64,000 bases of DNA, taken from positions 992,001 through 1,056,000 of the forward strand of contig BQFW01000009.1 in the NCBI GenBank assembly GCA_020891255.1, in the 5' to 3' direction. Of this stretch, positions 1,904 to 55,767 are shown piece by piece. Numbering within the stretch: position 1 is the first letter of the stretch; each line of letters begins with the position of its first letter. The stretch is from Entomortierella parvispora E1425. Taxonomy: Eukaryota > Fungi > Mortierellomycota. The position numbers and the translations under genes were made by a program. Below the pieces are notes generated by a model that worked only from the letters and a program-made list of their open reading frames with translations, did not search any database and had not been told where the DNA came from.

Positions 1904-2478
1904 AGCATATACAATGCCTTCCGTTTCTCTCGTTGTTCTCTGTCAGCAATCCACACCAAATATTCTTTCTTTACACTTTGTTTTATTATTGTGTTTTCCT
2001 TGTAATGTACTGCATCATATTGGGAAAAGCCCACTCTTGGCAAAGGGGGGAAAAGGTTAAGAGTGAGATGTGCGCTCTAAAATGCGATGTATCTGCAGCT
2101 GTTGGTCTCAATGATGTTAGAAGTCTAAACAGGGAAGCAGGTGGCTAACCAGGGTTTGTACACTTGGCCAAGGTCACGACGCGAGGTCTGCTGGAGGCCA
2201 TGGACAACGGAAGTGTCGATCTTGAATCCACATTGTTCTGTATGCCTGGATCCCACGGCAGACCAAATTTGAATAAAGCTGCGACTTGTTCAATTCTCGC
2301 CAGGGCGTTGCGAACACACGCGCTGAGGAGGGATGACGAATGGCCGGGGACATTGAACGAGAACCTTGATCCAGCTACTAATGATTGGAGCGCAGGCACG
2401 ATAGACAGAAGATAGTCCTTACCAACGACTGCTCGAGGGAGGACAGAGGAAATTGCAACGAGGTTGTTCATGAAGGGT

Positions 2479-4431
2479 TCAACTAGCTGTCCATCCGGTT
2501 TCCATGCCTGGGTCAATGTCTTCATCGAGGTCGTCGCCATCACGAGCATCTTGGGATGAAGTCTTCTCGGCGACAGCCACAGCATCAGCAGAGGCAGCAG
2601 CGAGGGCAGCGCAAGAGTTGTTGCCTGTAAGCGACAAATGCCTACGCAGCCCATCAAGTCGAGAGAAAGGTTTAGAGCAGATAGAACAACCGTAGTTTCG
2701 TTCACCCTTGTGAACAGCAGCCTCGTGGCGCTGGAGATCATGTTTTCGGGAGAAGGCCTTGGTGCAAGGGTCGAAGGAACAGACGAACGGTCGAACTGGG
2801 TCTGGGTCATGGGTTTTTTGATGAGAACGTAAATTGTATAGACGGGCGAACTGAAGGTCACAGTCCTCGTGTGGGCAGGTGAATCGCTTGGGTGCCGTGA
2901 GTCTCGAAGGATTGGGTTTTCGAATCCTGCGTTTCTTTGGCTTTGGAGCTGGTTGGGATGAATCGCCAGTGTCCGCTGCTGAGGAAGCGTTGGATTTGAG
3001 ACGGAGACGTATGATAGCCTTCCCCCCAGACGGACTCGCCAACGTAGGGCGAGTCCTCTTGGATGGCGAAGGAACGCACTCTCCTTCGGCTTTAATTTCG
3101 GCAAAGGTAGGGGATGTAGTAGCTGCATTGGATTGGAACTTATCTAGGGCCTTGCGCTTGAACCGAGCCACAGCCAAGGCCAATGGCCGCGAAGGCACAA
3201 ACTCGTCATCATCATCGTCTTCCTGCTCTTCTTCCTCTTCCTCCCCGTCCTCTTCAGAGAACAGCGGCTCGCCCTCCTCAGAACTGAGAGCAAGAGTGCC
3301 CTCGATCTTGGGAGACAACGACTGTTCGGATGTCGTCGATAACAGTGAAAGGTCGTCGTCATCAGAGCTGTAAACGCCAGGGGGAGCGCAACCGTGTCCG
3401 GGAGTCATGTGGAGAGTACCTGGAGAGATGGTGTGCTGTCCCCCAAAGGTGGGTTCAAGCTGTGCCAAGAGCCCATAGTCATATTCTTGAAAGAGCGAAT
3501 CAAAACCTTGGCGGTGATTCATACTAGACAAGGGACTGTCGAGGTCTAGGACAATCGCGCTCGCGCAGCCGCTGTCCAGGGGCATCATGGCCAGACCAAA
3601 GTCCTGCAGATATGGCGTCTGGAAAGGCGTCTGGAGATAAGGCGACCCAGGGGAATCGATCAGGGGTTGCTCGCGGAGCTGCTGCTGTTGATGATGATGA
3701 AGTTGCTGTTGTTGTTGTTGCACAAGCAGGGCCTCAAAGGCGACACTGTCGTGGCCAGTGACGAGATTCAACTGATGCTGATTCATCGACAATGCATCGA
3801 CACTGGTGTCGTCTAGGAATGCAGCCAGGCCATCGAACCCAAAGGTGCTTGTCGGCTCTGAGGGGGAAGCCATGTTACTGAGGCTCGACGTGGCAGTGCC
3901 AGCGCTTGGGTTTGGGATGGTAGAACAGAAGAAGTCGAGGGAGGGTGTCTGTGGGGTACAGAGCGGATTGTTGCTGGTACTGTTGCTGTGTGTCGAAGAA
4001 AGAGTCGAGGAAGGAGTGGGGGTTGGGGAAGGAGCAGAGGGAGGAGGAGGGAGGGCGAGAACAGGAGCGGCTGGGGAAAGGCCATTGCTATCCACCGCGG
4101 CAGGCATCTGACGCATTTGGCGAAGCTGAAGCTGGAGTTGAAGCTGCTTGTTCTCATCAAACAGTGGGTAGTCAAAGGAGGGCTCGTTGGCACCAAAGAG
4201 GAAGAAGTCGCGGTCGACGGTGTTGGAAGATGTCGTTGCGATCGCAGCAGAGACTGCGGTGGCACCTGCGTCCGGAGGTGGAGGAGGACGGGTTTGACCC
4301 TGATCCGTCGGGTCTTGAAGCAAGGATTGCATCAACCAAGAGGCGTCCGCGGGCGAGAGGACGACGCGGACAGGGGAGGCAGAGGCAGGGGATGGGCAGC
4401 GAGAGCTGTGGAGCGAGGATTGGGCAGACAT
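2479..4431 (-). CDS. C2H2 zinc-finger transcription factor, Crz1-like finger array (3 fingers)
   Basis: Fingers FARLYNLRSHQKTH / FSRKHDLQRHE / FSRLDGLRRH near the C-terminus, with S/P/Q-rich and acidic regions and a basic NLS-like patch (PKPKKRRIRK). Start placed at MSAQSS (ATG 4431); the upstream ORF extension is CT-rich 5' leader. Confidence 0.85.
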   Translation of the reverse strand: MSAQSSLHSSRCPSPASASPVRVVLSPADASWLMQSLLQDPTDQGQTRPPPPPDAGATAVSAAIATTSSNTVDRDFFLFGANEPSFDYPLFDENKQLQLQLQLRQMRQMPAAVDSNGLSPAAPVLALPPPPSAPSPTPTPSSTLSSTHSNSTSNNPLCTPQTPSLDFFCSTIPNPSAGTATSSLSNMASPSEPTSTFGFDGLAAFLDDTSVDALSMNQHQLNLVTGHDSVAFEALLVQQQQQQLHHHQQQQLREQPLIDSPGSPYLQTPFQTPYLQDFGLAMMPLDSGCASAIVLDLDSPLSSMNHRQGFDSLFQEYDYGLLAQLEPTFGGQHTISPGTLHMTPGHGCAPPGVYSSDDDDLSLLSTTSEQSLSPKIEGTLALSSEEGEPLFSEEDGEEEEEEQEDDDDDEFVPSRPLALAVARFKRKALDKFQSNAATTSPTFAEIKAEGECVPSPSKRTRPTLASPSGGKAIIRLRLKSNASSAADTGDSSQPAPKPKKRRIRKPNPSRLTAPKRFTCPHEDCDLQFARLYNLRSHQKTHDPDPVRPFVCSFDPCTKAFSRKHDLQRHEAAVHKGERNYGCSICSKPFSRLDGLRRHLSLTGNNSCAALAAASADAVAVAEKTSSQDARDGDDLDEDIDPGMETGWTAS

Positions 4432-5614: not shown

Positions 5615-7888
5615 ATGGCAGCACAACCGCTCCAGCTGCCCGAGGTCCTTTTTGCCTTGGGTGCCTACCTCGATGCCTCACAGCTCCTTCAGTGCTCCAG
5701 AGTGTGTCGGTCCTGGTACGAGGCATTCGCTCCTCTCATCTGGGAAGACCTCCACGTCCACACCGACCCCCTAGAAGATCGCAAGGATCTCTCCCACTCT
5801 TCTATTCATGCTCGTTACATTTCCTTCTGCCACCCAAACCCCACATCTTCCTCAAATACAGACTCCAGAGAACCTGGTCCAACGGACAAAGAGGTGGGAT
5901 TATCTGAACTCCTCCAATCAAAGGGAGCATGGTTGCGATCTCTCTGCTACCATGGCCACGGATCCACTTTGCAGTTCTCACTTGGAAAGGATTGTACCAA
6001 ACTCAGATCTCTGAGTCTCAAAGGCCCGCTTCCTTTCCTAGGGAATGAGAAATTGCGCTTCTCCAATGCAGACAAAAGCATTCGCCCTCTTTTAATTCAT
6101 GGCGACGGCGGGGGGCCATATCTTCGCGACTATCAAGAAAGATGCAAGGTCCTATTCCGCCAAAATCGAGAACACCTCCAGCACCTGACCCTTCGGGATT
6201 TTGAATGGAGAGAGGAGTTTAGGCTTCAGCCTGGTCTCCCAGCGTGGAACCCTTTGTTTTCCTGCGGATCGGGATACCACCACCTTCGGTCGCTGTCTCT
6301 GATTCGATGCGGCCTTCGGGGACGAGAACTAAAGGCGCTCTGGGCCGTTGGATCTACCTTGGAGACGCTCACCATGGAAAGCGTTCAGATAAATATAGGT
6401 CATTGGATGCACCGCAGATATCTGCGCGATAAATCAACAAATTCGGATCAACCAAAGGGACAGGAGAGTGACGAAGACGACGACGATAACGTCCTAGGAA
6501 AGGACCGAATCTTTCCGCAACTCCGAGAGCTCAAACTACACAAACCTGGAGATATGGGCAAAGTATCTGAGATAATGGAGTATATTGTGAAAGAGTGTCC
6601 TCGTCTTCAAGCCCTGGAATGGCGCGAGGTCTCCCATGGCAGAGAGTTTTCATACGAGGTCTTTGCAGATATCCTTGAAGAAGGATTTTGGCCCCATCTG
6701 AGCTCCATTGACATCAAGGAATTGCCGTGGTTGCAGGATTCAACTTTGCAAAGGATTCTCAAGACTTACCAACAACCAATTGTGACGCCACCGACAACAC
6801 CCCTACTATCGGCAACATCAACGCCTCCACAGACACCTACTTCCTCGCCACCCACTCCTCTCCCTTGGCATTATGGCTCTCCAAAACCCAAACGTCAGTT
6901 AGTACGAACAACTTTGACAAGGTTAGACGTGCCGATTCTGCACTTGTACGAATCTACTTTTGATCTTATCCGGCCCCATTTCACGACCTTGAGGCATATC
7001 AACCTGCTGAACGTCAATACGTCAACCCGTACCTATGTCTTCGAGGTTCTTATCAATTGTTCCACACTGGAAGTTCTATACTCCAACCTGATGACCATTG
7101 GCGATTTTATCGATCTTTTGCCCGATCCAACCAATAACCCTCCGAATAACCATGACCCAACGCCTGGAAAGGTCGCAGACACAAAGGCAAACGCGGGGCA
7201 AGAGTACAGAGAACCTAAATGGAAGAAACCTTGGATTTGCAAAAATCTGCAAGAGTTACACATGGTTCTTGACATGGGAATCGACGAGCCAAGCTTTCGT
7301 CCGTATATGCTTACTCCCTACGCGCGACCATACACGCCGAGAGAGCTACATCTTGCTAGTTTGTTCTTCCAGCAGTTGGGAAAGCTCACTCGGCTACGCG
7401 TCCTCGACATGGGCTTCCATAGATATATCTCAGGCCCTCGCGTCACTCACACGTCTGTATTGCCGTTCCAGTTGTGCGCAGGTCTCAGTCATTTGCAATC
7501 CTTGAGATCTTTGGAAGTCGTGCAGTTCAGGGGTCGCCAAGACTTGAATCTGTGGGACCTGCAGTGGATGTTGGATTATTGGCCGGGATTGAGGGAGATC
7601 GGAGGCTCTCCGTTGAGTGCACGAGTCGACCCAGAGATTGTGTCTGGCGAAAACAACACATCGCCGTTGATATATCACCTTGAGTTCGCACGGATACTCC
7701 GGGAGAGAGGCATCAAGATAATTCCTTGGACAACGTCGTACTACCACAACACCAACTGCTCCCACAAAAAGATGAGTGAACTCGATCAGGAATGTGTTGC
7801 TCGTTGGAGAGAAAGGATGCTTTTGGAAGCTGAGGAACACAAAGCGCTAGGGCAGGGCGCTGATTTGATGGGGCAATCCACCGATTGA
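5615..7888 (+). CDS. F-box/LRR protein (757 aa, intronless)
   Basis: N-terminal PLQLPEVLFALGAYLDASQLLQCSRVCRSWYEAFAPLIW. Family C-terminal motifs WICKNLQEL, QLGKLTRLRVL, LPFQLCAGLSHLQSLRSLE, WMLDYWPGL. Confidence 0.9.
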   Translation: MAAQPLQLPEVLFALGAYLDASQLLQCSRVCRSWYEAFAPLIWEDLHVHTDPLEDRKDLSHSSIHARYISFCHPNPTSSSNTDSREPGPTDKEVGLSELLQSKGAWLRSLCYHGHGSTLQFSLGKDCTKLRSLSLKGPLPFLGNEKLRFSNADKSIRPLLIHGDGGGPYLRDYQERCKVLFRQNREHLQHLTLRDFEWREEFRLQPGLPAWNPLFSCGSGYHHLRSLSLIRCGLRGRELKALWAVGSTLETLTMESVQINIGHWMHRRYLRDKSTNSDQPKGQESDEDDDDNVLGKDRIFPQLRELKLHKPGDMGKVSEIMEYIVKECPRLQALEWREVSHGREFSYEVFADILEEGFWPHLSSIDIKELPWLQDSTLQRILKTYQQPIVTPPTTPLLSATSTPPQTPTSSPPTPLPWHYGSPKPKRQLVRTTLTRLDVPILHLYESTFDLIRPHFTTLRHINLLNVNTSTRTYVFEVLINCSTLEVLYSNLMTIGDFIDLLPDPTNNPPNNHDPTPGKVADTKANAGQEYREPKWKKPWICKNLQELHMVLDMGIDEPSFRPYMLTPYARPYTPRELHLASLFFQQLGKLTRLRVLDMGFHRYISGPRVTHTSVLPFQLCAGLSHLQSLRSLEVVQFRGRQDLNLWDLQWMLDYWPGLREIGGSPLSARVDPEIVSGENNTSPLIYHLEFARILRERGIKIIPWTTSYYHNTNCSHKKMSELDQECVARWRERMLLEAEEHKALGQGADLMGQSTD

Positions 7889-10458: not shown

Positions 10459-11626
10459 TTACGCGACGGGCGTAGGGGCAGTCTTGCCCAAGATCCTCCA
10501 GTTGTCCTCAGGATCCGTAATATAGCGCTGGAAGACAATGTACTCAAGCACTGGCACAGGCTTCTTCAGATCTCCAGCAATCAACTTGTTCTTCTTGTCA
10601 AAAACGCCCATGCTCTATTATCAGACACTTTTGTTAGACACTCTCCGGAAACAAAGAAACATGCATCATCCATTGGGGACCGTAAAACACAGCCAATATC
10701 TACCTGGTTTGAATGCAAACGAACAATCATTTGGATCAAGACATGTCCTCCGATCTGGCCCTGACGGATTGATACAATCTGGGGTTTCTCCAAAAGACCG
10801 TGGTAACGCCACTCGTAACGACCAACACGCTCCTTGAGCTGTCCCTTCAGCTTTGCGTACATGGAAGGTGTGCAGATCTCCTCGAGGTATTTCCTGTCAC
10901 CCTTTGCGAATGCTTCGTTCATTCCAATATACGCTTCCTCAGACTCTCCCAAGAAACGTCCTGTAATTCCGAAATCCTTGAGCTTCCAGCACATACCCAA
11001 CGTACTATTTCCGTAATTGAGGCACCAGAAAGTTAGTTGCAAGCCCTGAACGGAATAATAATATACCTCTGATCCGCCTCCTGTCCTTGCTCTGCTTTAC
11101 CTGGCAGCAGTCATTCCAGTGTTCCGCATGCGGAGCTTGGCGTACTTGATCCACTTCTTGTAATCGCTGAAGAGAGAAGGGCGGTTCTCCTTCTCAGGAA
11201 CAACATAGGGGTCTATACGATGAAGGATATTCGAGTTAATCAACAACCTCTATAGTTGAATCCTCACTTTGATTCAGTGAGTTTTTTTTTCTTTTTTCTT
11301 TTTTTTTTTTTTGCACAAAACAAAAAAAATCCCCAGAAAAGTTGGTGGCGCCGAGCCTTCCCCAAACACATTCGACAAGATTCAGGCCTAAACATTGAAG
11401 CAGTTCAATTACCCATGATGCCAACCTCCTTGAGAGTCATTTGTTGAGTCATTTGACGCGGTACGCTAGAGTAGGGAGCAGATTGTGCAAGGATTCCAGT
11501 CATGGCACGCATGCGGATCAAATGGGCGGCGGATCCAGCAGTCTGATTGTTGGCCATGGCCAAGGTCCTGACGCATTGGACAGCCTGGGCAGCGTTGTTG
11601 GAGACACGGGAAGTCAGACGGAACAT
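10459..11626 (-). CDS. Mitochondrial Tim44-like domain protein (Mba1/MRPL45 family), multi-exon
   Basis: Arg/Ala-rich presequence-like N-terminus. Tim44-domain motifs AYIGMNEAFAKGDRKYLEEICT, QMIVRLHSNQ, EYIVFQRYITDPEDNWRILG. Internal exon boundaries approximate. Confidence 0.75.
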
Positions 11627-12188
11627 GGCTGGCGACAGTGTGTGCGGTGAAAAAAAGAAGTAGAGAGGGCAGGGCGTTGGGTCGTCTTGTCCTGGTGAAT
11701 CGAAGGAGGGGATCGGATTGATTGCCGAACGGTGGTGGTCCTGGCCGAAAGAGGAAGGCAGCGTGTTTTCTCCGAACGGGGTGCCTCAGCCACCATCGCG
11801 TCTGCGTAAAATCAAGAGTGGATGGCGGCTTAGACTCAGGCATGGACATCACATTGCTCCTAACAAGAAAAAGCAGTTCGAAGAAACGACAGGTTTCACT
11901 GATCCAGACGGAGTTAGATCCTGGCCTTCCTCGACTTCTCTTCATTCTCCTGCGATGGCCTATCCATCGTTAACACAAACGTGCCTGACACCGAGACCCC
12001 GGCTCACCGACTGAGTGACAGCTACAGCTAGCCCACTCGCCAGCCAAACAGACCCGATGGCGGGAGGACTGCGTGCATCTGTTTGCGCTGACGCCAGGGC
12101 CTGATGTTTTATGTTGGCTCTAGTTCTTGTTTTCAACTCTTTACCTCCTTCCCTCCACTTTTTACCCTCTCCAAAAACTCACCTCACC

Positions 12189-13609
12189 ATGGGTCTCTTC
12201 AATAAGTTCTTTGGCGTGATCGAGCCCTACACCGGCGCTCCCGTCCTTGCTGCCATCTATGCCATTCTTGGCCTCGTCTTCATGATCCTCTCCGCTGGTC
12301 GCTGTAAGTGCCATTTTCCCCACTCTCCACTGCAACCCGGATATTCAGGGTACATGTTCTATAGTCTTTCGCATTACGCCTCTACTTCTTCATCACCATC
12401 CTTATCCTTCTTCACTCCCAAATCCAAATCACCCTCGCGATTATCCCCGAGTTGTGCACTTCCTTTCTCATATTGCTACACTTCCCAGCAAATCACCAGT
12501 TCCTGGACCTGGCTGAACTGAGCTCATTCACATCGAACAAACCTGCTCTGTCTCTCGGCTTGTCCCTGATGTTTGGATGGCAGCTATTACAATTACACAC
12601 ACTACCTTCCATGTCCTTGTTCCTTTCAGGATTCCTGTACGGGTCCCCTTGCAGCACAGCTATTTTTTTAAAAAAATCAAAAAAAAACGGGCAGCCTTCC
12701 TATGTCATTCTGTGCTGTACTCCGGTGAGCCCAAGAGGGCTGGAGTGAATGCATTGATTTCTCATCTGCTGTCGCCCTCCACAACTGCATCTCTTGTGCT
12801 GTCCCTGCATCATTTTTTCCCCGATTGTTTATTATTGTTTCTCTTCGAGTTGCTGAGATTCCTTCATCAGATTTCTGCTCTTTTATCAGTTTCCTCACCC
12901 ACCTTCAACTCCCACCCCCTGGTGGTGGTCTGCCTTTTGTCGTGTTTCGCGCTCTTTTACCGGGAGTCGAAAATAAGCCAAAGAACAGAAACATGACCTT
13001 ATTCAATTCCTATTCACCTTTACCTTTTTTCTATGAGGCCCTGCTGGGACCCGGGGATTGAAAACACTCTGAGACGACCAAACTTACCGAAACACTGCCA
13101 AACAGAACACTAACACTTTTTTTTCGCTTTGGTTGAAAGGGATCATGCCCCATGCCGAGTCTGATCTCTCCATCCCCTGGGCCGTTGTCTGCTTCTTGTT
13201 GCTCCTCACCGGTGTCTACGGCTACTGGGCCACCACCCGCGGCAGCACCTGGCACCATCGCCAGTTCGTCTCCGCCTCCTGGGGATTCTTGCTCATGTTC
13301 TTGTGCTGGGCTATTGTTTACATTGCTGTAGAGGATCACCACGTTGAGAAGGTCAACGACGGCTGCATGGCCCACAACCCTTCGTGGGGTTTGAAGAAGT
13401 GCGATGACCGTCGCAAGACTGCTTCCTTGATCGCCACCATCCTTGTCACCATCGGCATGGTCCTTGGCTTCTACCTTACCTTGGTTGTCTCCAAGTGGGT
13501 CACTGCCATCGAGTGGGCTGAGCATCTCGAGGAGGAGCGTCGTTTGGAGGAGTACCGCAGTGGACACACTCAGGAGAAGTTCGCCATTCAGGCCGAGGAG
13601 GCTGTTTAA
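12189..13609 (+). CDS. Multi-pass membrane protein of unknown function (2 exons, 836-nt intron 12304-13139)
   Basis: Exon 1 ends CGC T|GTAAGT; CACTAAC branch then AAAG|GG ATC ATG gives SAGRWIMPHAE in frame. About 4 hydrophobic helices and a Cys pair in a luminal loop. Confidence 0.75.
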
Positions 13610-49933: not shown

Positions 49934-51757
49934 TTATTGCTGTGAGGCTATGTTCCTGGTGCTTAGAAGACGCGATAGTTCCTTGTGGTCAGCTTTTGTT
50001 CTGCCAAGTCGGCCCTCGACCAACTTCAAAGACGGCCAATGGTCCATCATCCACTGAACTGCGCTCTTTGACATGTTCATGGAGTGTGTCTGCAAAAATC
50101 GAACCGTCTCCAGTTCTGTCAAGGTCGCGAGCAAATTCAAACCGCGTTTTAGTTGCCACTCCAGAGTTTGAATTGATTGACCCCGTTCTCGGATGGGGAA
50201 AACAAGATCCAAATCCAATATCTCAAGGCTAACCAAGGCTGAGAGGCGCTCAAAGACCACCTGCTGTTGACCCTTTGAACCCAAAGTCATTGCTGGAGAC
50301 CCTTTGCTCACTTCGTTCGTAGATTGGGTCGAATCGATATGGATGCGCCAGCGCTTGAGATTCCTACATGCCCAGGGTATGCCCAGAGCAATGGCATCGA
50401 CTCGAATAACGTTTCCGGCTATCGCCTCTAGTCTCGGGCATGATTCCAAGATCTCCTCCAGCATTGCACTAGTGGCATTGATGCATCGTACTAGATCCAC
50501 CTCGACTAATACTTGGAAATGCTCTCGATTTCTCAAAGAATTGAACGCCTTGGGCCCAAATCCGACTCCCTGTAAGCACAGTGTCCTCAGCGGACTACAG
50601 GATGCGGTTCCTTCTTGTCCAATGTTCTCCAGCAGCAACTCTAGGACGATATCTGAGATTCCTCCTGTTCCCCGAGTACTCGTGATAGTAACAGATGCCA
50701 AATCTGGCCAGCGACGACAGGTCTGGCCTCCAACAATACCTCGCCCTGTTGCCGGATCCTGGAATTTTGGATGAAGCAACATTGCCGTCGTTGTAATATC
50801 CAAGCCTCCTCCATTAGCCGTCATCCAAAAGTCTGTTGACCGATGTAAATGCCACACCAGCCTCTGAAGTTTTGGCGCCTGAGAAATAAACAGGCGGATA
50901 GTCAGGTCAGGGCCAATTCCACGAACCTCATCCAGGATCAAGTCCCGAACGGTTCCTTCCCTTAGGGTATATTCCGGTCTAAATCCGCCAATTTCATCAA
51001 CCGTGTCATTCTCCTCGAAGTGCTGCAGCGATTCTTCTTCCCACATCACCTCTGGATGTAAGGTAACAGATGAATTTACAAAGGCCCAGCATCTCCGCCT
51101 TAGCTTGCTCAACTCTGCTTCCTTGCTGATCATGTTCCTCGGTCGTTTGGGCATCATTCCGGTCAAGTCGCCTTCATTCACCTTATTCCCGGCAGTGTTG
51201 TTGAGACTGATGTCATTCAAGCTGTCCTGCATATGTTCGTCCGTATCGTCAGAATCTTCTCCCATACACCAGAACTGGGGGAATATTTCAAGTTTAGAGG
51301 CCGGATAGATCTCCAGCAGAGGTCCTCTGACTACCTCACATCGGATGAACTCGAATTTTTTGACCTGAGTCTGCGCGGCCTTCCAGATCATCAGCATGTC
51401 CAGCAGGGGCATATCAGCCCAGCCCAAGAACGCCATCCTCTCGAGGTGAGATCTGGCGTGCCCGCAGAGCTCGACCAAACTCCAGAGGAACTTTGGTGTC
51501 GTAGCTAATCCTGGCAGACTCATCCGGAACTCGATTTGCCTCAACGTTGTTCGGTTATCCTCTATTAACTCCTGGAATGTTCTCCAAGGGGAGTCGCGGT
51601 AGCGCCTGGACTGATATCCAGCTTGGCGACACATCATGGTGGACTGGATAGTAGGCCCGATGAGACAAAGCTTTTGAAGACGAGTGCAGTGGGGCCCAAG
51701 CGAAAGACGCCAAGCAGGAACCACAGAGCCTTCAAAGATAAGACTGCGTATGTGCTG
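49934..51757 (-). pseudogene. 3' (LRR) half of an F-box/LRR gene split by a Harbinger insertion
   Basis: Stop-free LRR frame (WACRNLKRW, VFERLSALVSLEIL, WMMDHWPSL) that begins at the CTG target-site copy 51755-51757. Confidence 0.85.
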
Positions 51758-51798
51758 GGCATTAGATGTTTTTCGCAGCCCGAAAATCACGCCCAATT
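51758..51798 (+). repeat. Left terminal inverted repeat
   Basis: GGCATTAGATGTTTTTCGCAGCCCGAAAATCACGCCCAATT. Confidence 0.9.
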
Positions 51799-51921
51799 GA
51801 ACGGCATGGGTGTGGCTTAGAAGCCTGATTTTGTTTCTAATTAAAAAGGTTTTTTCTCATAAATGGAGGTCTTCTCCCCTTAAGAATATCTCGTGACTTC
51901 GATTTCGATCTGATCGTTCTG

Positions 51922-53145
51922 ATGTCGAGTTCGACATGGAGACATCTATGTCCACCCACCCGACTTGCCACTGGTGGCCACCGAAGGTCGTCCAATCACC
52001 CAAGCTACATGTATAACCTTGCTCTGTTAATGGGATTGGCGCACCAAGCTATTGAGTATCGCCTCCTAGATCCGGATTTTATCCTCAACCAACAAGAAGA
52101 GGACGAGGACGAGCAGGATGACGAGGCAGAGGAACAGGATGCTCCTCGACCAATACGACCTTTTCCTCTGGACCATTCGTTCGACGTTCGGGCTTATTCA
52201 GACACCTATTCAATCCAAGAGTTCCGCTTTACGTGTGCGCAACTACAGGAGATAATAGGTCTGCTAAGGATCCCTCCATTTATTGTCACGCCATCCAGGG
52301 ACAAAGTCGACTCACTCACAGTTCTATGTATGGCGATGTATCGCTTGTCATTCCCGGAACGCCTTAACCGCATGGAGCGTATGTTTAGACGATCTGCTCC
52401 CTCGATATCTCGGCTGATAAATCAGATTGTTCGATGGGTGATGCTGCGGTGGGATCGACTTTTGTATTGGGACGAACATCGCTTGACCAGGGAGAAGTTG
52501 AGCGAGTATGCCGATGCTTGTTACCATGCCAGCGGAGGACAGTGCAACAACGTCTTCGCTTTCGTCGATGGAACAGCTCGAGAGATACAAATGCCCACTA
52601 TTAATCAGCAGGCGATGTACAGTGGACACAAGTGCCATCATTGCGTTAAGTATCAAGGGATTGTTGCTCCGGATGGAATTCTCTTGCACCTCAGCTCAGC
52701 CTTCTCAGGAACCAACCACGATATGACTATATTCGATGGCACAGGATTTCAGCAAGTCCTGGATCAGTTTGCGTATGATCAGAACGGTGTCGCTCTTGCA
52801 ATATATGGAGACTCGGCCTACACCGCCAATGGCCACGTTTTGATCGGCTATCGAGGAAACGGACTGACTCCAGACCAGATCGCATTCAACCGCGTCATGT
52901 CCAGTCTACGTGTCACGATCGAGTGGACCTTCAAACACATCACGCAACAGTTCATGGGAATTGACTTTCCTCGGACTCATCGACTCCTGTCCACATGGAT
53001 CGAAGGTCACTATAGATTCGCAGCGTTGTTTTCCAATATCCACACATGCTACAATGGTGGAGAGGTGAACACATATTTCAATATCAATCCTCCCACAGTA
53101 CAAGAGTACATTAGTGCAGCAGCAATGAGAAACGTTTTATTTTGA
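51922..53145 (+). CDS. Harbinger DDE transposase (DDE_Tnp_4/HARBI1-like)
   Basis: Catalytic motifs FVDGT, GTNHD, YGDSAY, RVTIEWTF and YSGHK, preceded by an HTH region; uninterrupted 407 aa. Confidence 0.93.
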   Translation: MSSSTWRHLCPPTRLATGGHRRSSNHPSYMYNLALLMGLAHQAIEYRLLDPDFILNQQEEDEDEQDDEAEEQDAPRPIRPFPLDHSFDVRAYSDTYSIQEFRFTCAQLQEIIGLLRIPPFIVTPSRDKVDSLTVLCMAMYRLSFPERLNRMERMFRRSAPSISRLINQIVRWVMLRWDRLLYWDEHRLTREKLSEYADACYHASGGQCNNVFAFVDGTAREIQMPTINQQAMYSGHKCHHCVKYQGIVAPDGILLHLSSAFSGTNHDMTIFDGTGFQQVLDQFAYDQNGVALAIYGDSAYTANGHVLIGYRGNGLTPDQIAFNRVMSSLRVTIEWTFKHITQQFMGIDFPRTHRLLSTWIEGHYRFAALFSNIHTCYNGGEVNTYFNINPPTVQEYISAAAMRNVLF

Positions 53146-53186
53146 GATAAAATTATATTACAATGAAGAACTGTAGCATGTCAAAG

Positions 53187-54500
53187 TCATTTTTTGAAGG
53201 ATGCCATCATTTCAGCGAAGGCCTTAGCTTGCAGCATGAGGGCCTCTGCCGTCTTAGCTGCAGCCTCCGCCTGAATCTTGGTCGCTTCCGACTGATTCTT
53301 CAAAAAGGCGGAAAGTTCAGCTTGTTGAGCACTCTGGGCAAGATGTCGCCTTTCTTCCGCTTCCATCTTTTCCTGGAATCTCCTCCTTTTTTCGATACGA
53401 TCTTCCTTCCATTCATTGAGATGCTGCTCCTGTAATTTGAAGTGTTGCTCCTGCATTTCTGCTTGTTTCGCTCCATTTGCCATTGCAGCTTGCATGTTCA
53501 AAACCAACTGGGCTTGAGCAGTTTTTCTCTTCAGAGCAGGCGTTCGTGGCTGGTGCGATGCAGTACTTGACTCTGACTCTGTTCCAGATGAAATTCGACC
53601 AGATTGTGTAGGCGAAGGCGAAGAATTATCCTGTATGTCTGACTCCAGTTCATTAAGTATGACATCCAGTGGTCGTTGCCGTGGTGTTGTTGGCGTTGGT
53701 GTTCCGGATCGAGATGAGCTTGGGGACGCAGATCGAGACGAGTTCGGGGTTGATGTTGAAGACAGGGCATACCGAGGTCCAGCTCGAGACCGTTCCAAGA
53801 GTTCTAAGCCATTCGCCTTATTGGTTTCCACGCGTTCCCTTGCCAACATCCTTTGATTGCTCCGTTGCGAGTTTGCCTCTCGAGCTGCAAGCTCATGCTC
53901 ATATACAGATTTGCTGTACTTTAGGACCTCAGTGAGCTCAGGGTTGATTCCTGTACCCGTCTTGCGTCGACGTTCATATTCTTGATAGGCTTTGGACAGG
54001 GCATTCCAGTTCTCCCTACAAGTCCGTGTTGTGACGCCCTCAAAAACTCTTGGTTGTCCTGCCTTCTCTTGATCGTCATCATAGCGATGAAGCTGCACAA
54101 CGACCAACCCCCAAGCCTCTTCTGTCTTGCCATAGCCAGCCGCAAATGGCCTCACAACCTCCAACACCTTGAGAAGCTCTATCTGCAACCTGTCGTTCCT
54201 CTGGAACCCGCGAAATGATGGCTTGGATTTCCTCTGTTTATCCATGGGTACGCTCATAATGTCGGTGGAGGCTTCAATTTCCATTGCAAGAAGGCCGTCA
54301 GCTACGTCCGGCATATTTCCTGTCCCCTCATTTGCCTCGTCTGCATGGACCCCAGAATCAATGTTGGACAGCGATGTATCGTTTGATGTGTTCCTAATTC
54401 CTTGGTTGAGATCAAAGTGGTCCAGATTCCCTTGATTCCTGTCGTCGAGGTGGTTCATGATGGTGGGAGGATGAGAAGGATCAGTGCGTTCTGCCTTCAT
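53187..54500 (-). CDS. Harbinger second ORF, Myb/SANT-like DNA-binding protein with coiled-coil tail
   Basis: ELLKVLEVVRPFAAGYGKTEEAW..TCRENWNAL Trp-spaced helices and a C-terminal E/Q/R coiled coil. Own ATGs at 54500 and 54458. Confidence 0.8.
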   Translation of the reverse strand: MKAERTDPSHPPTIMNHLDDRNQGNLDHFDLNQGIRNTSNDTSLSNIDSGVHADEANEGTGNMPDVADGLLAMEIEASTDIMSVPMDKQRKSKPSFRGFQRNDRLQIELLKVLEVVRPFAAGYGKTEEAWGLVVVQLHRYDDDQEKAGQPRVFEGVTTRTCRENWNALSKAYQEYERRRKTGTGINPELTEVLKYSKSVYEHELAAREANSQRSNQRMLARERVETNKANGLELLERSRAGPRYALSSTSTPNSSRSASPSSSRSGTPTPTTPRQRPLDVILNELESDIQDNSSPSPTQSGRISSGTESESSTASHQPRTPALKRKTAQAQLVLNMQAAMANGAKQAEMQEQHFKLQEQHLNEWKEDRIEKRRRFQEKMEAEERRHLAQSAQQAELSAFLKNQSEATKIQAEAAAKTAEALMLQAKAFAEMMASFKK

Positions 54501-54657
54501 CTCGAACGCGATGCGCGTTTTTTTCACATACAAGCCACACGGTTTTTCCTTCAGAAAGAACGTCCCTCGGCGTACTTTTGAGCAGAAATTTACGTTGAAA
54601 TAGAGTTCAACCTCGCTAAATTGATGACCCAACCTCTTTATTTGATTATTTACGTAA

Positions 54658-54698
54658 AATTGGGCGTGGTTTTCGGGTTGCGAAAAACGTCTTATGTC
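54658..54698 (-). repeat. Right terminal inverted repeat
   Basis: Reverse complement GACATAAGACGTTTTTCGCAACCCGAAAACCACGCCCAATT; 5 mismatches to the left TIR. Confidence 0.9.
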
Positions 54699-55067
54699 CT
54701 GAATCAGCGACGGAGCCAGAGGGACAGTGTGAGCATGAAGGCCCAACGAGCCATACAGCCTTTGAAGCTCAATATTATACGCGGCATGGGTCGCATCATA
54801 TCCACTGACTTGGACGTCCTCATCTTCCTGCCGCTGTTGGAGCTCAGAGTAAAAGGTTGTGTCGTAGCTTACGGTGAGCTCGCGCCACACCAAAGGAGCA
54901 AAGGTACTGAGCCACAGCTTCGAGACCCTGAGGCAAACGGTCAGATCCTGGAGGGGGAGAAAGGAGCCAACTCGGGTTCTGATCTCGGGAAGGTCGAGTG
55001 CATTGTCGAGCATGAAACGAGGGTCGAGATGCGAGAGAAGAGGAATGGACAAACGAAGTGCACTCAT
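54699..55067 (-). CDS. 5' (F-box) half of the split gene, reading in frame into the transposon
   Basis: NALDLPEIRTRVGSFL..CLRVSKLWLSTFAPLVW F-box; host sequence ends at codon CAG (target site, 54699-54701). Confidence 0.85.
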
Positions 55068-55149
55068 TCATGTTAGCGACTGGCCAAAAAAAAAAAAAGG
55101 GTGGCTGAGCGAGGATGTGACGCCACCAATTTTTTTTCAACAAGGTCAT

Positions 55150-55458
55150 TCATCCTGGCTTTCTGTACCGCCCTTCAGGCTTGTTCTGGTGAGAGATAGG
55201 ATTGTGTCCCATAGTCATCAGCCCTCCTTCTAAACATTTCAGACTTGGCACATCCTCTGCCCCCATGCTCTCATCGCCTATGAGCCAGACCAGCTCCAGG
55301 CTCTTCAGGCTCCGCAATAGTGTGAAACCCATGTCCAAGGTGAAAGGTAGATCTTGCATGACCACGATCTGCGTCGACGGGTTCCCTTTGGCCGTAGCCG
55401 GTGAGGACCTCTGAAGATCGGCGTTCGGATCCAAGGTGCTTTTGTTGATCCAGCGCAT
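55150..55458 (-). pseudogene. C-terminal remnant of another F-box/LRR gene
   Basis: QDLPFTLDMGFTLLRSLKSLELV..MGAEDVPSLKCLEG resembles the family C-terminus but lacks the usual W-M-x-x-x-W segment. No matching N-terminal part was found upstream. Confidence 0.6.
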
Positions 55459-55767
55459 CTGTCTTTTACAGCGGACGACAGACGACCGGAGAAATCATCG
55501 GCAGATAGCTATATCCTTCTTGGTAGTCAAACAGGTCTGCACTTAAGAACTTCTGGTTACCATAGTATCGTCATGAATGCAAATTGGGTGAAGATGAGAG
55601 GTAAGATGGAAGGCAGGCGCGCTGGTACCAGTCTAATACTCTTGCAGCAATTGAACACCGAAAGGCAAGAGCGAAATGGTTTTCGTACAGAATTTTATTT
55701 TGATTGATTATTGAAAACTGGATGGTACAAATGCAAATGAAAGAAAAAAATAGGGATGAAGACGAGC

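Follow-up and report, generated by a model that had tools for sequence, protein, structure and literature searches.

A 626-codon chimeric reading frame on a young PIF/Harbinger insertion allele of an F-box/leucine-rich repeat gene in Entomortierella parvispora E1425: most probably a by-product of insertion

When a DNA transposon lands in a host exon and the resulting reading frame stays open, has a new gene been formed or only a long open reading frame (ORF)? The question is raised by a locus in a 64,000-nt stretch of the Entomortierella parvispora E1425 assembly (contig BQFW01000009.1 of GCA_020891255.1, positions 992,001 to 1,056,000; hereafter the window, in which all positions are counted from the first letter). 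Here, a single stop-free minus-strand ORF of 626 codons (53187..55067) runs from host coding sequence through a terminal inverted repeat (TIR) and the adjoining leader of a PIF/Harbinger element into the second ORF of that element (ORF2), all in one frame. The ORF listing and a direct reading of the sequence both confirmed this layout, which an initial annotation of the locus had described. The frame is made up of 124 host codons, one Ile codon derived from the target-site duplication, 64 leader codons and 437 ORF2 codons, which corrects an earlier count of 123 host and 66 element codons. The host sequence that supplies the first ~124 residues resumes beyond the element, where another minus-strand ORF (49934..51796) carries it on. 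As set out below, the 626-codon ORF is most probably a chimera that arose incidentally with a young insertion, i.e. a chance by-product and not a new gene. The features of the locus are as follows.

53187..55067, minus strand: the 626-codon chimeric ORF
54696..55067, minus strand: F-box-like N-terminal part of the split host gene; fusion codons 1-124, with the start of the ortholog corresponding to Met19
54693..54695: copy of the target-site duplication on the ORF2 side; degenerate, reading ATA on the minus strand and not AAT; Ile125 of the fusion
54653..54692: TIR on the ORF2 side, 40 nt; the minus strand starts AGACGTTTTTCGC
54501..54692, minus strand: leader of the element, made up of the TIR and subterminal DNA; 64 codons free of stops in the ORF2 frame, without an ATG
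53187..54500, minus strand: element ORF2, 437 amino acids (aa), ATG at 54500, stop codon included; 41 relatives by phmmer
53958..54209, minus strand: predicted Myb/SANT-like three-helix core of ORF2; ORF2 residues 98-181, with invariant Trp130 and Trp165
53781..53930, minus strand: long helix beyond the ORF2 core, a probable coiled coil; ORF2 residues 191-240 in the structural model
51922..53145, plus strand: Harbinger transposase ORF, 407 aa, convergent with ORF2; DDE_Tnp_4
51764..51803: TIR on the transposase side, 40 nt; pairs with 54653..54692
51761..51763: copy of the target-site duplication on the transposase side; ATT on the plus strand, AAT on the minus strand; an Asn codon of the host gene
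49934..51760, minus strand: leucine-rich repeat (LRR) part of the host gene, severed from the F-box; collinear with the ortholog P0051, with an SKP2 LRR match
51764..54692: complete autonomous PIF/Harbinger element, 2,929 bp, delimited by its other copies and by the empty site in sequencing run X3

Element boundaries, empty site and copies

The boundaries of the element follow from a comparison with an allele that lacks it. Contigs from four sequencing runs (X1, X3, X10 and X12) were aligned to window positions 50700-55700. Run X3 is labelled as the same species and diverges from the window by ~4.5%; X10 and X12 carry the same label and are uninformative, the host gene being uncovered in them at a likeness of at least 85%. 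In X3, one contig of 8,885 nt spans 50700-51762 and resumes at 54695-55142, so that 2,932 nt are skipped at the joint (51762 to 54695). On the minus strand the joint reads ...TCG CTG ATT CAG GAC AAT GCC CAG CAC ATA... (SLIQ-DNAQ-HIRSL), that is, flank, a single AAT and flank, with the host frame unbroken. Since the empty site has this form, the duplication is the 3-bp AAT and the element occupies 51764..54692, a length of 2,929 bp that is equal in a second copy, L004. The insertion point lies in a single coding exon of the host gene, between Asp124 and Asn125, at a CAATG site. Within the coding part X3 differs by substitutions and one 3-nt insertion only, the bigger insertions and deletions being found upstream of the ATG.

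The junctions of two further copies, L004 and L005, read C-AAT/AGACG...CATCT/AAT-G (slashes marking the element ends), with perfect duplications located at 7764-7766 and 10696-10698 in L004; L005 ends alike. The window copy reads C-ATA/AGACG...CATCT/AAT-G. The duplication had first been placed at CAG (CTG/CAG), an assignment that the X3 empty site and the junctions of the other copies rule out: both the "CAG...CAG" pair and the outermost 5-7 nt first counted as TIR belong to the host (CAGGAC / GCCCAG). The inverted-repeat pair as first detected (51757-51803 / 54653-54699), with an annotated length of 46-47 nt, is reduced by this trimming to TIRs of 40 nt that match at 35 of 40 positions, and the TIR core occurs at two sites only within the window. 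The terminus AGACGTTTTTCGCAACCC also ends a distant relative, L007, which backs the boundary on the ORF2 side. Two other solutions were considered and rejected. A TAA duplication in a palindromic CA-TAA-TG target would give an empty site that is 2 nt too long and out of frame; ends of CAAT...AATG with a GAA duplication fit L005 only, and here, too, the predicted empty site is too long and out of frame. Three observations on the flanks may be added. The ORF2-side duplicate of the window copy, ATA, amounts to a two-base swap; each of the full-length copies, three in all, occupies a C-AAT-G site, in a constant orientation relative to the element; and the flank on the ORF2 side reads ATT in L007 and AGT in the relative L008.

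The 407-aa ORF at 51922..53145 matches Pfam DDE_Tnp_4 (PF13359) with an E-value of 1.4e-23, and an identical copy of this transposase is named "nuclease HARBI1" at NCBI. In exact-sequence look-ups, neither the 626-aa fusion nor the 407-aa transposase had a record as an annotated protein. GCA_020891255.1 (strain E1425) holds three full-length copies of the element, all at unrelated sites: the window copy (L006, contig BQFW01000009) and two on BQFW01000014, of which L004 is 100% identical over 2,933 nt, with 0 differences from the window copy, and L005 (also recorded as L002) is 99.93% identical. A further copy on BQFW01000001 (L001) is truncated, without TIRs and 94% identical. The word depth in run X1 fits three full copies, as the transposase half of the element is covered at 236.7 against 78.9 in the flanks (3.0x). 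Both TIRs and the transposase ORF of the window copy are intact. The element is an active, autonomous PIF/Harbinger transposon that moved very recently in E1425, because the X3 allele is empty and copies of 99.93-100% identity occupy unrelated sites.

L004 likewise interrupts coding DNA: when L004 and one AAT are removed, an open segment of 425 codons runs across the junction, so that exon insertions are not rare for the subfamily. The ORFs flanking L004 lie at 6564-7838 and 10639-13412 (both minus strand), the upstream ORF showing weak XPG-I-like Pfam matches. Searches of X3 for the element interior (window 51869-54540) returned no contig at a likeness of at least 85%, save for a low-complexity acidic stretch; the Harbinger subfamily may be wholly absent there, reflecting either a recent gain in the E1425 lineage or a loss in X3. 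Run X1 also contains variants at single-copy depth, namely GGGCG inserted in the ORF2-side TIR (54661) and, between the two genes (53130-53149), a 3-nt deletion and a 7-nt insertion, as well as a loose end at 54692 that runs into an unknown flank. These point to the existence, besides L001 and the three full copies, of others that are partial or diverged.

The severed host gene and the ORF2 protein

Among the matches listed, the ortholog of the host C-terminal piece is P0051 from Gryganskiella cystojenkinii. Its residues 1-124, which end ...LAPSLIKD, are 50% identical to the N-terminal piece in the window; from residue 125 (HAHHIRSL...) it matches the C-terminal piece with 56% identity over 585 residues. 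As P0051 is collinear on both sides, the host gene can be described as a single exon that runs unbroken through the insertion point and is conserved between genera. The initial annotation had called its N-terminal piece an F-box. A two-ortholog profile searched against PDB supports this identity, retrieving the KDM2B F-box with an E-value of 3e-4, as do the Atlas features of the piece (0.94, with 10/10 of the best named matches F-box-like), whereas the F-box-like Pfam match at residues 28-65 (PF12937) stays below its cut-off, with 19.1 bits against 24.3 (21.4 bits for the ortholog). An AlphaFold2 (AF2) model of the 124-aa piece, built from a two-sequence alignment, was unusable (pLDDT 37). The C-terminal piece matches the leucine-rich repeats of SKP2 (E-value 7e-4) and, below cut-off, PF24758 (20.9 bits); this LRR part lies outside the fusion ORF.

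Taken as a whole, these similarities characterize the host gene as a predicted FBXL-type F-box/LRR gene, a putative substrate receptor of Skp1–Cullin–F-box (SCF) complexes. Because the insertion parts the F-box from the substrate-binding repeats, the insertion allele is most simply read as a fresh knock-out. In the deposited annotation the orphaned LRR part appears as a 567-aa gene starting from an internal Met at 51637 (51637-49934, minus strand), and the F-box piece is unannotated. The annotated 567-aa gene is a fragment of the transposon-disrupted gene.

ORF2 had been assigned to the Myb/SANT class. Fold and feature comparisons speak for this assignment, although Pfam gave no match even at an E-value of 10 and none of the tests, taken singly, reached a curated threshold. 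Residues 1-250, used as the query of an exhaustive phmmer search, yielded 41 relatives with a conserved region at ~90-245, and W130 and W165 are invariant in the family alignment. A word-indexed homology search gave, among the matches listed, one close relative, a 412-aa hypothetical protein of Entomortierella parvispora. MADF was touched by 2 of 30 relatives (E-value about 0.006). With the family alignment as input, AF2 predicted helices 103-116, 126-146 and 158-181 as well as the long helix 191-240 with pLDDT >90, and residues 1-97 as disordered. When the model was compared with solved structures in Foldseek, the best match, a weak one, was the DNA-binding domain of Schizosaccharomyces pombe Sap1 (E-value 0.05, probability 1.0, TM 0.63 by target), and matches to Swiss-Prot models, with weak scores, included the Harbinger-derived TSNARE1 and MSANTD2, Sap1 and Myb proteins. 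Atlas features placed ORF2 with MADF and Myb_DNA-bind_3/4 clusters, with a structural TM of 0.69 to a cluster auto-named Myb/SANT-like. These fold and feature matches, together with the convergent position beside the DDE_Tnp_4 gene inside the TIRs, make a Myb/SANT-like Harbinger partner protein the best reading of the ORF2 model.

Sap1 also resembles ORF2 in layout, with a coiled coil placed after the DNA-binding domain, and a relationship between Sap1 and Harbinger partner proteins might exist. In all three copies the deposited annotation starts ORF2 from the second ATG, at 54458, giving 423 aa.

The open leader and the standing of the chimeric frame

The chimeric frame depends on the 192 nt between the element terminus and the ORF2 ATG. 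Given the composition of this leader (42% GC), the probability of 64 open codons is 0.013 by shuffling and 0.016 analytically; the initial annotation had put it higher, at ~4%. The two remaining frames contain 5 and 4 stops. The leader of L004 is identical, and that of L005 carries one substitution, which is non-synonymous (V to I). Being open in all copies, the leader lets every copy read open into its flank, for 21 (L004), 11 (L005) and 125 (window) codons. Conversely, the ORF2-frame leader is interrupted in the relatives, by one stop in L003 (whose transposase shares 57% aa identity with that of the window element), three in L007 and at least four in L008. The open leader is thus a trait of the subfamily, special neither to this insertion nor to the wider family. 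It had been suggested that stops in other genomic copies, set against an open leader here, would suggest selection; in the comparison L004 and L005 were equally open, an outcome that the initial annotation had itself named as refuting it. As the leader was already open in the subfamily, only orientation (1/2) and frame (1/3) had to come out right for an in-frame sense fusion, and any coding-exon insertion of this element will produce one in 1 of 6 cases.

Harbinger Myb-like proteins bind subterminal DNA and the transposase. On this basis, the initial annotation proposed that the host promoter yields an F-box–ORF2 chimera recruiting Skp1/SCF to the transposase or to TIR chromatin, either as a nascent anti-transposon degrader or as a first step of domestication. 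The anatomy behind the proposal stands: the ORF is intact and in frame, the F-box-like motif (residues 28-65) falls entirely within the retained part, and the ORF2 core is predicted to be a Myb/SANT-like three-helix domain. Moreover, functional F-box genes that captured domains of transposable elements (TEs) exist in nematodes and zebrafish (PMC12062965). The functional part of the proposal found no support, and we consider it very unlikely. The insertion is strain-specific; the open leader is common to all copies, and the element is fully mobile; 64 leader-derived and ~95 disordered residues would separate the two domains. There is no sign of selection on the fusion, as the copies are 99.93-100% identical, the site is empty in X3 and the element can still move; with copies at 100% and 99.93% identity there has been no time for selection, and none is visible. 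The deposited annotation, built by AUGUSTUS with RNA-seq-derived hints (PMC8759367), does not join the F-box piece and ORF2, and these separate calls are weak evidence against a dominant fusion transcript. Nor is the insertion fixed at the orthologous position, being absent in X3, with the Gryganskiella ortholog uninterrupted; and domestication with loss of mobility and purifying selection is not seen, the TIRs and transposase being intact and the sequence showing 0 differences from L004. Were the proposal true, the allele would be a newborn, polymorphic SCF adaptor damping the element that created it, and an observable first step of capture.

An even less probable explanation is that the open leader is a designed feature of the subfamily, with ORF2 translated from upstream by way of a non-ATG start or the trapping of host exons. 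The contrast of 0 stops in 64 codons (P about 0.015) with 5 and 4 in the remaining two frames is in its favour, as are the two of three copies residing in coding DNA and a short stretch (NFCSK...) conserved with L003 in the same frame. This stretch, at window 54560-54600 and at ~2900-2950 of L003 (both minus strand), translates as NFCSKVRRGTFF and NFCSKLHRWMFF, respectively. Conservation of subterminal motifs at the DNA level explains it equally well, and the shared stretch is probably such a motif, serving as a protein-binding site or promoter. A designed leader is further contradicted by the stops in that frame in L003, L007 and L008, by the sole leader substitution between copies, which alters an amino acid (V to I), and by the host gene of L004, which is opposite in orientation to ORF2. 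In addition, the N-terminal 90 residues of ORF2 are unconserved and its relatives begin at comparable ATGs, ~90-110 residues ahead of the conserved core, as does ORF2 from 54500 or 54458. In L003 (a Logan contig) a single in-frame TGA at 2431-2500 (minus strand) parts a 96-aa acidic N-terminal ORF from the conserved core, which may reflect a decayed copy or a sequencing error. Finally, three identical 2.9-kb copies could mislead an assembler into placing the element in the F-box gene by a repeat mis-join, but the chance of such an artefact is negligible given that short-read-derived X1 contigs (from a run that is probably of the same sample) cross both junctions mismatch-free (50700-51789 and 54663-55700), that a 3-bp duplication flanks the element and that X3 provides a precise empty site.

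The explanation of the frame as an incidental by-product therefore remains the preferred one, and three points weigh against it. With zero divergence, an absence of selection is inseparable from too little elapsed time. The evidence is at the DNA level, and the fusion may be expressed. Lastly, the composition of the leader makes 64 open codons improbable (P about 0.015), and only chance in one lineage is offered to account for them.

In the course of events that we propose, an active PIF/Harbinger element recently entered a CAATG site in the F-box/LRR exon of E1425. The flanking DNA there is genuinely coding, and as orientation (sense) and frame both agreed with it, the insertion yielded 626 open codons. 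Its main effect is probably the loss of the host gene through the parting of F-box and LRR, and ORF2 is most likely still translated from its own ATG; the fusion itself would have no selected function. As there is no intron and the 3' end of ORF2 itself would terminate the transcript, a read-through mRNA for an F-box–leader–ORF2 protein is plausible if the host promoter is active; we regard it as possible, if not the expected outcome, and even then as an unselected by-product. Such a protein is predicted to comprise the F-box-like motif, a probably unstructured linker of ~160 residues and, from ORF2, the DNA-binding part and the coiled coil. By analogy to F-box proteins and Harbinger partners elsewhere, it might bind Skp1, the transposase or the TIRs. 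If the transcript exists, the allele offers a convenient natural case for studying the effects of a newborn fusion. Overall, the event is an ordinary one in which an active DNA transposon disables a gene and leaves a chimeric frame behind.

Relation to known fusions and to other Harbinger elements

F-box capture of TE domains is already a described class. The F-box::Mariner-HTH family of Caenorhabditis and F-box::CxC7 of zebrafish have been reported, as have 820 candidate proteins from eukaryotes at large (PMC12062965); these genes are fixed, transcribed and under purifying selection, and the transposon has been lost (PMC12062965). The frame described here resembles them in joining an N-terminal F-box-like segment to a TE-derived DNA- or protein-binding domain in one frame. 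It differs in being a single strain-specific allele known from DNA, in which the element is intact and mobile; the allele is not fixed, and no selection on it is visible. It is an example of the presumed raw material for F-box::TE-domain genes, which is rarely caught at the polymorphic stage.

Host–transposase fusions in vertebrates likewise combine a host domain with a DNA-binding domain encoded by a DNA transposon. They arise mainly through alternative splicing to transposon exons (bioRxiv 10.1101/2020.05.07.082677), whereas the present frame results from direct in-frame insertion into an exon, is read through the TIR and involves the accessory protein instead of the transposase. Hosts have repeatedly domesticated the Myb-like proteins of Harbinger elements (PMC9392472, PMC9710019, PMC5339849). 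NAIF1, MSANTD2, TSNARE1 and plant HDP2/ALP2 also derive from the second ORF of Harbinger elements, and TSNARE1 is itself a Harbinger-derived domain fused to a host domain. Those genes are ancient, immobile and conserved; in contrast, the E1425 fusion is days to millennia young, polymorphic and still inside a transposon.

The element itself conforms to autonomous PIF/Harbinger transposons in its DDE_Tnp_4 transposase, a convergent second ORF with a predicted Trp-containing three-helix domain, TIRs, a 3-bp duplication and recent mobility. A modest value of the locus lies in showing that a Harbinger family is active in a fungus of the Mortierellaceae, as documented by a precise empty site and three near-identical copies, and that its target, CAATG/AAT, is unusual. 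The usual duplication is TWA, whereas AAT within CAATG is found in 3/3 copies here. The element further departs from the usual pattern in that ORF2 is without a Pfam Myb match and has Sap1 as its best solved structure, and in a leader that is open up to the terminus.

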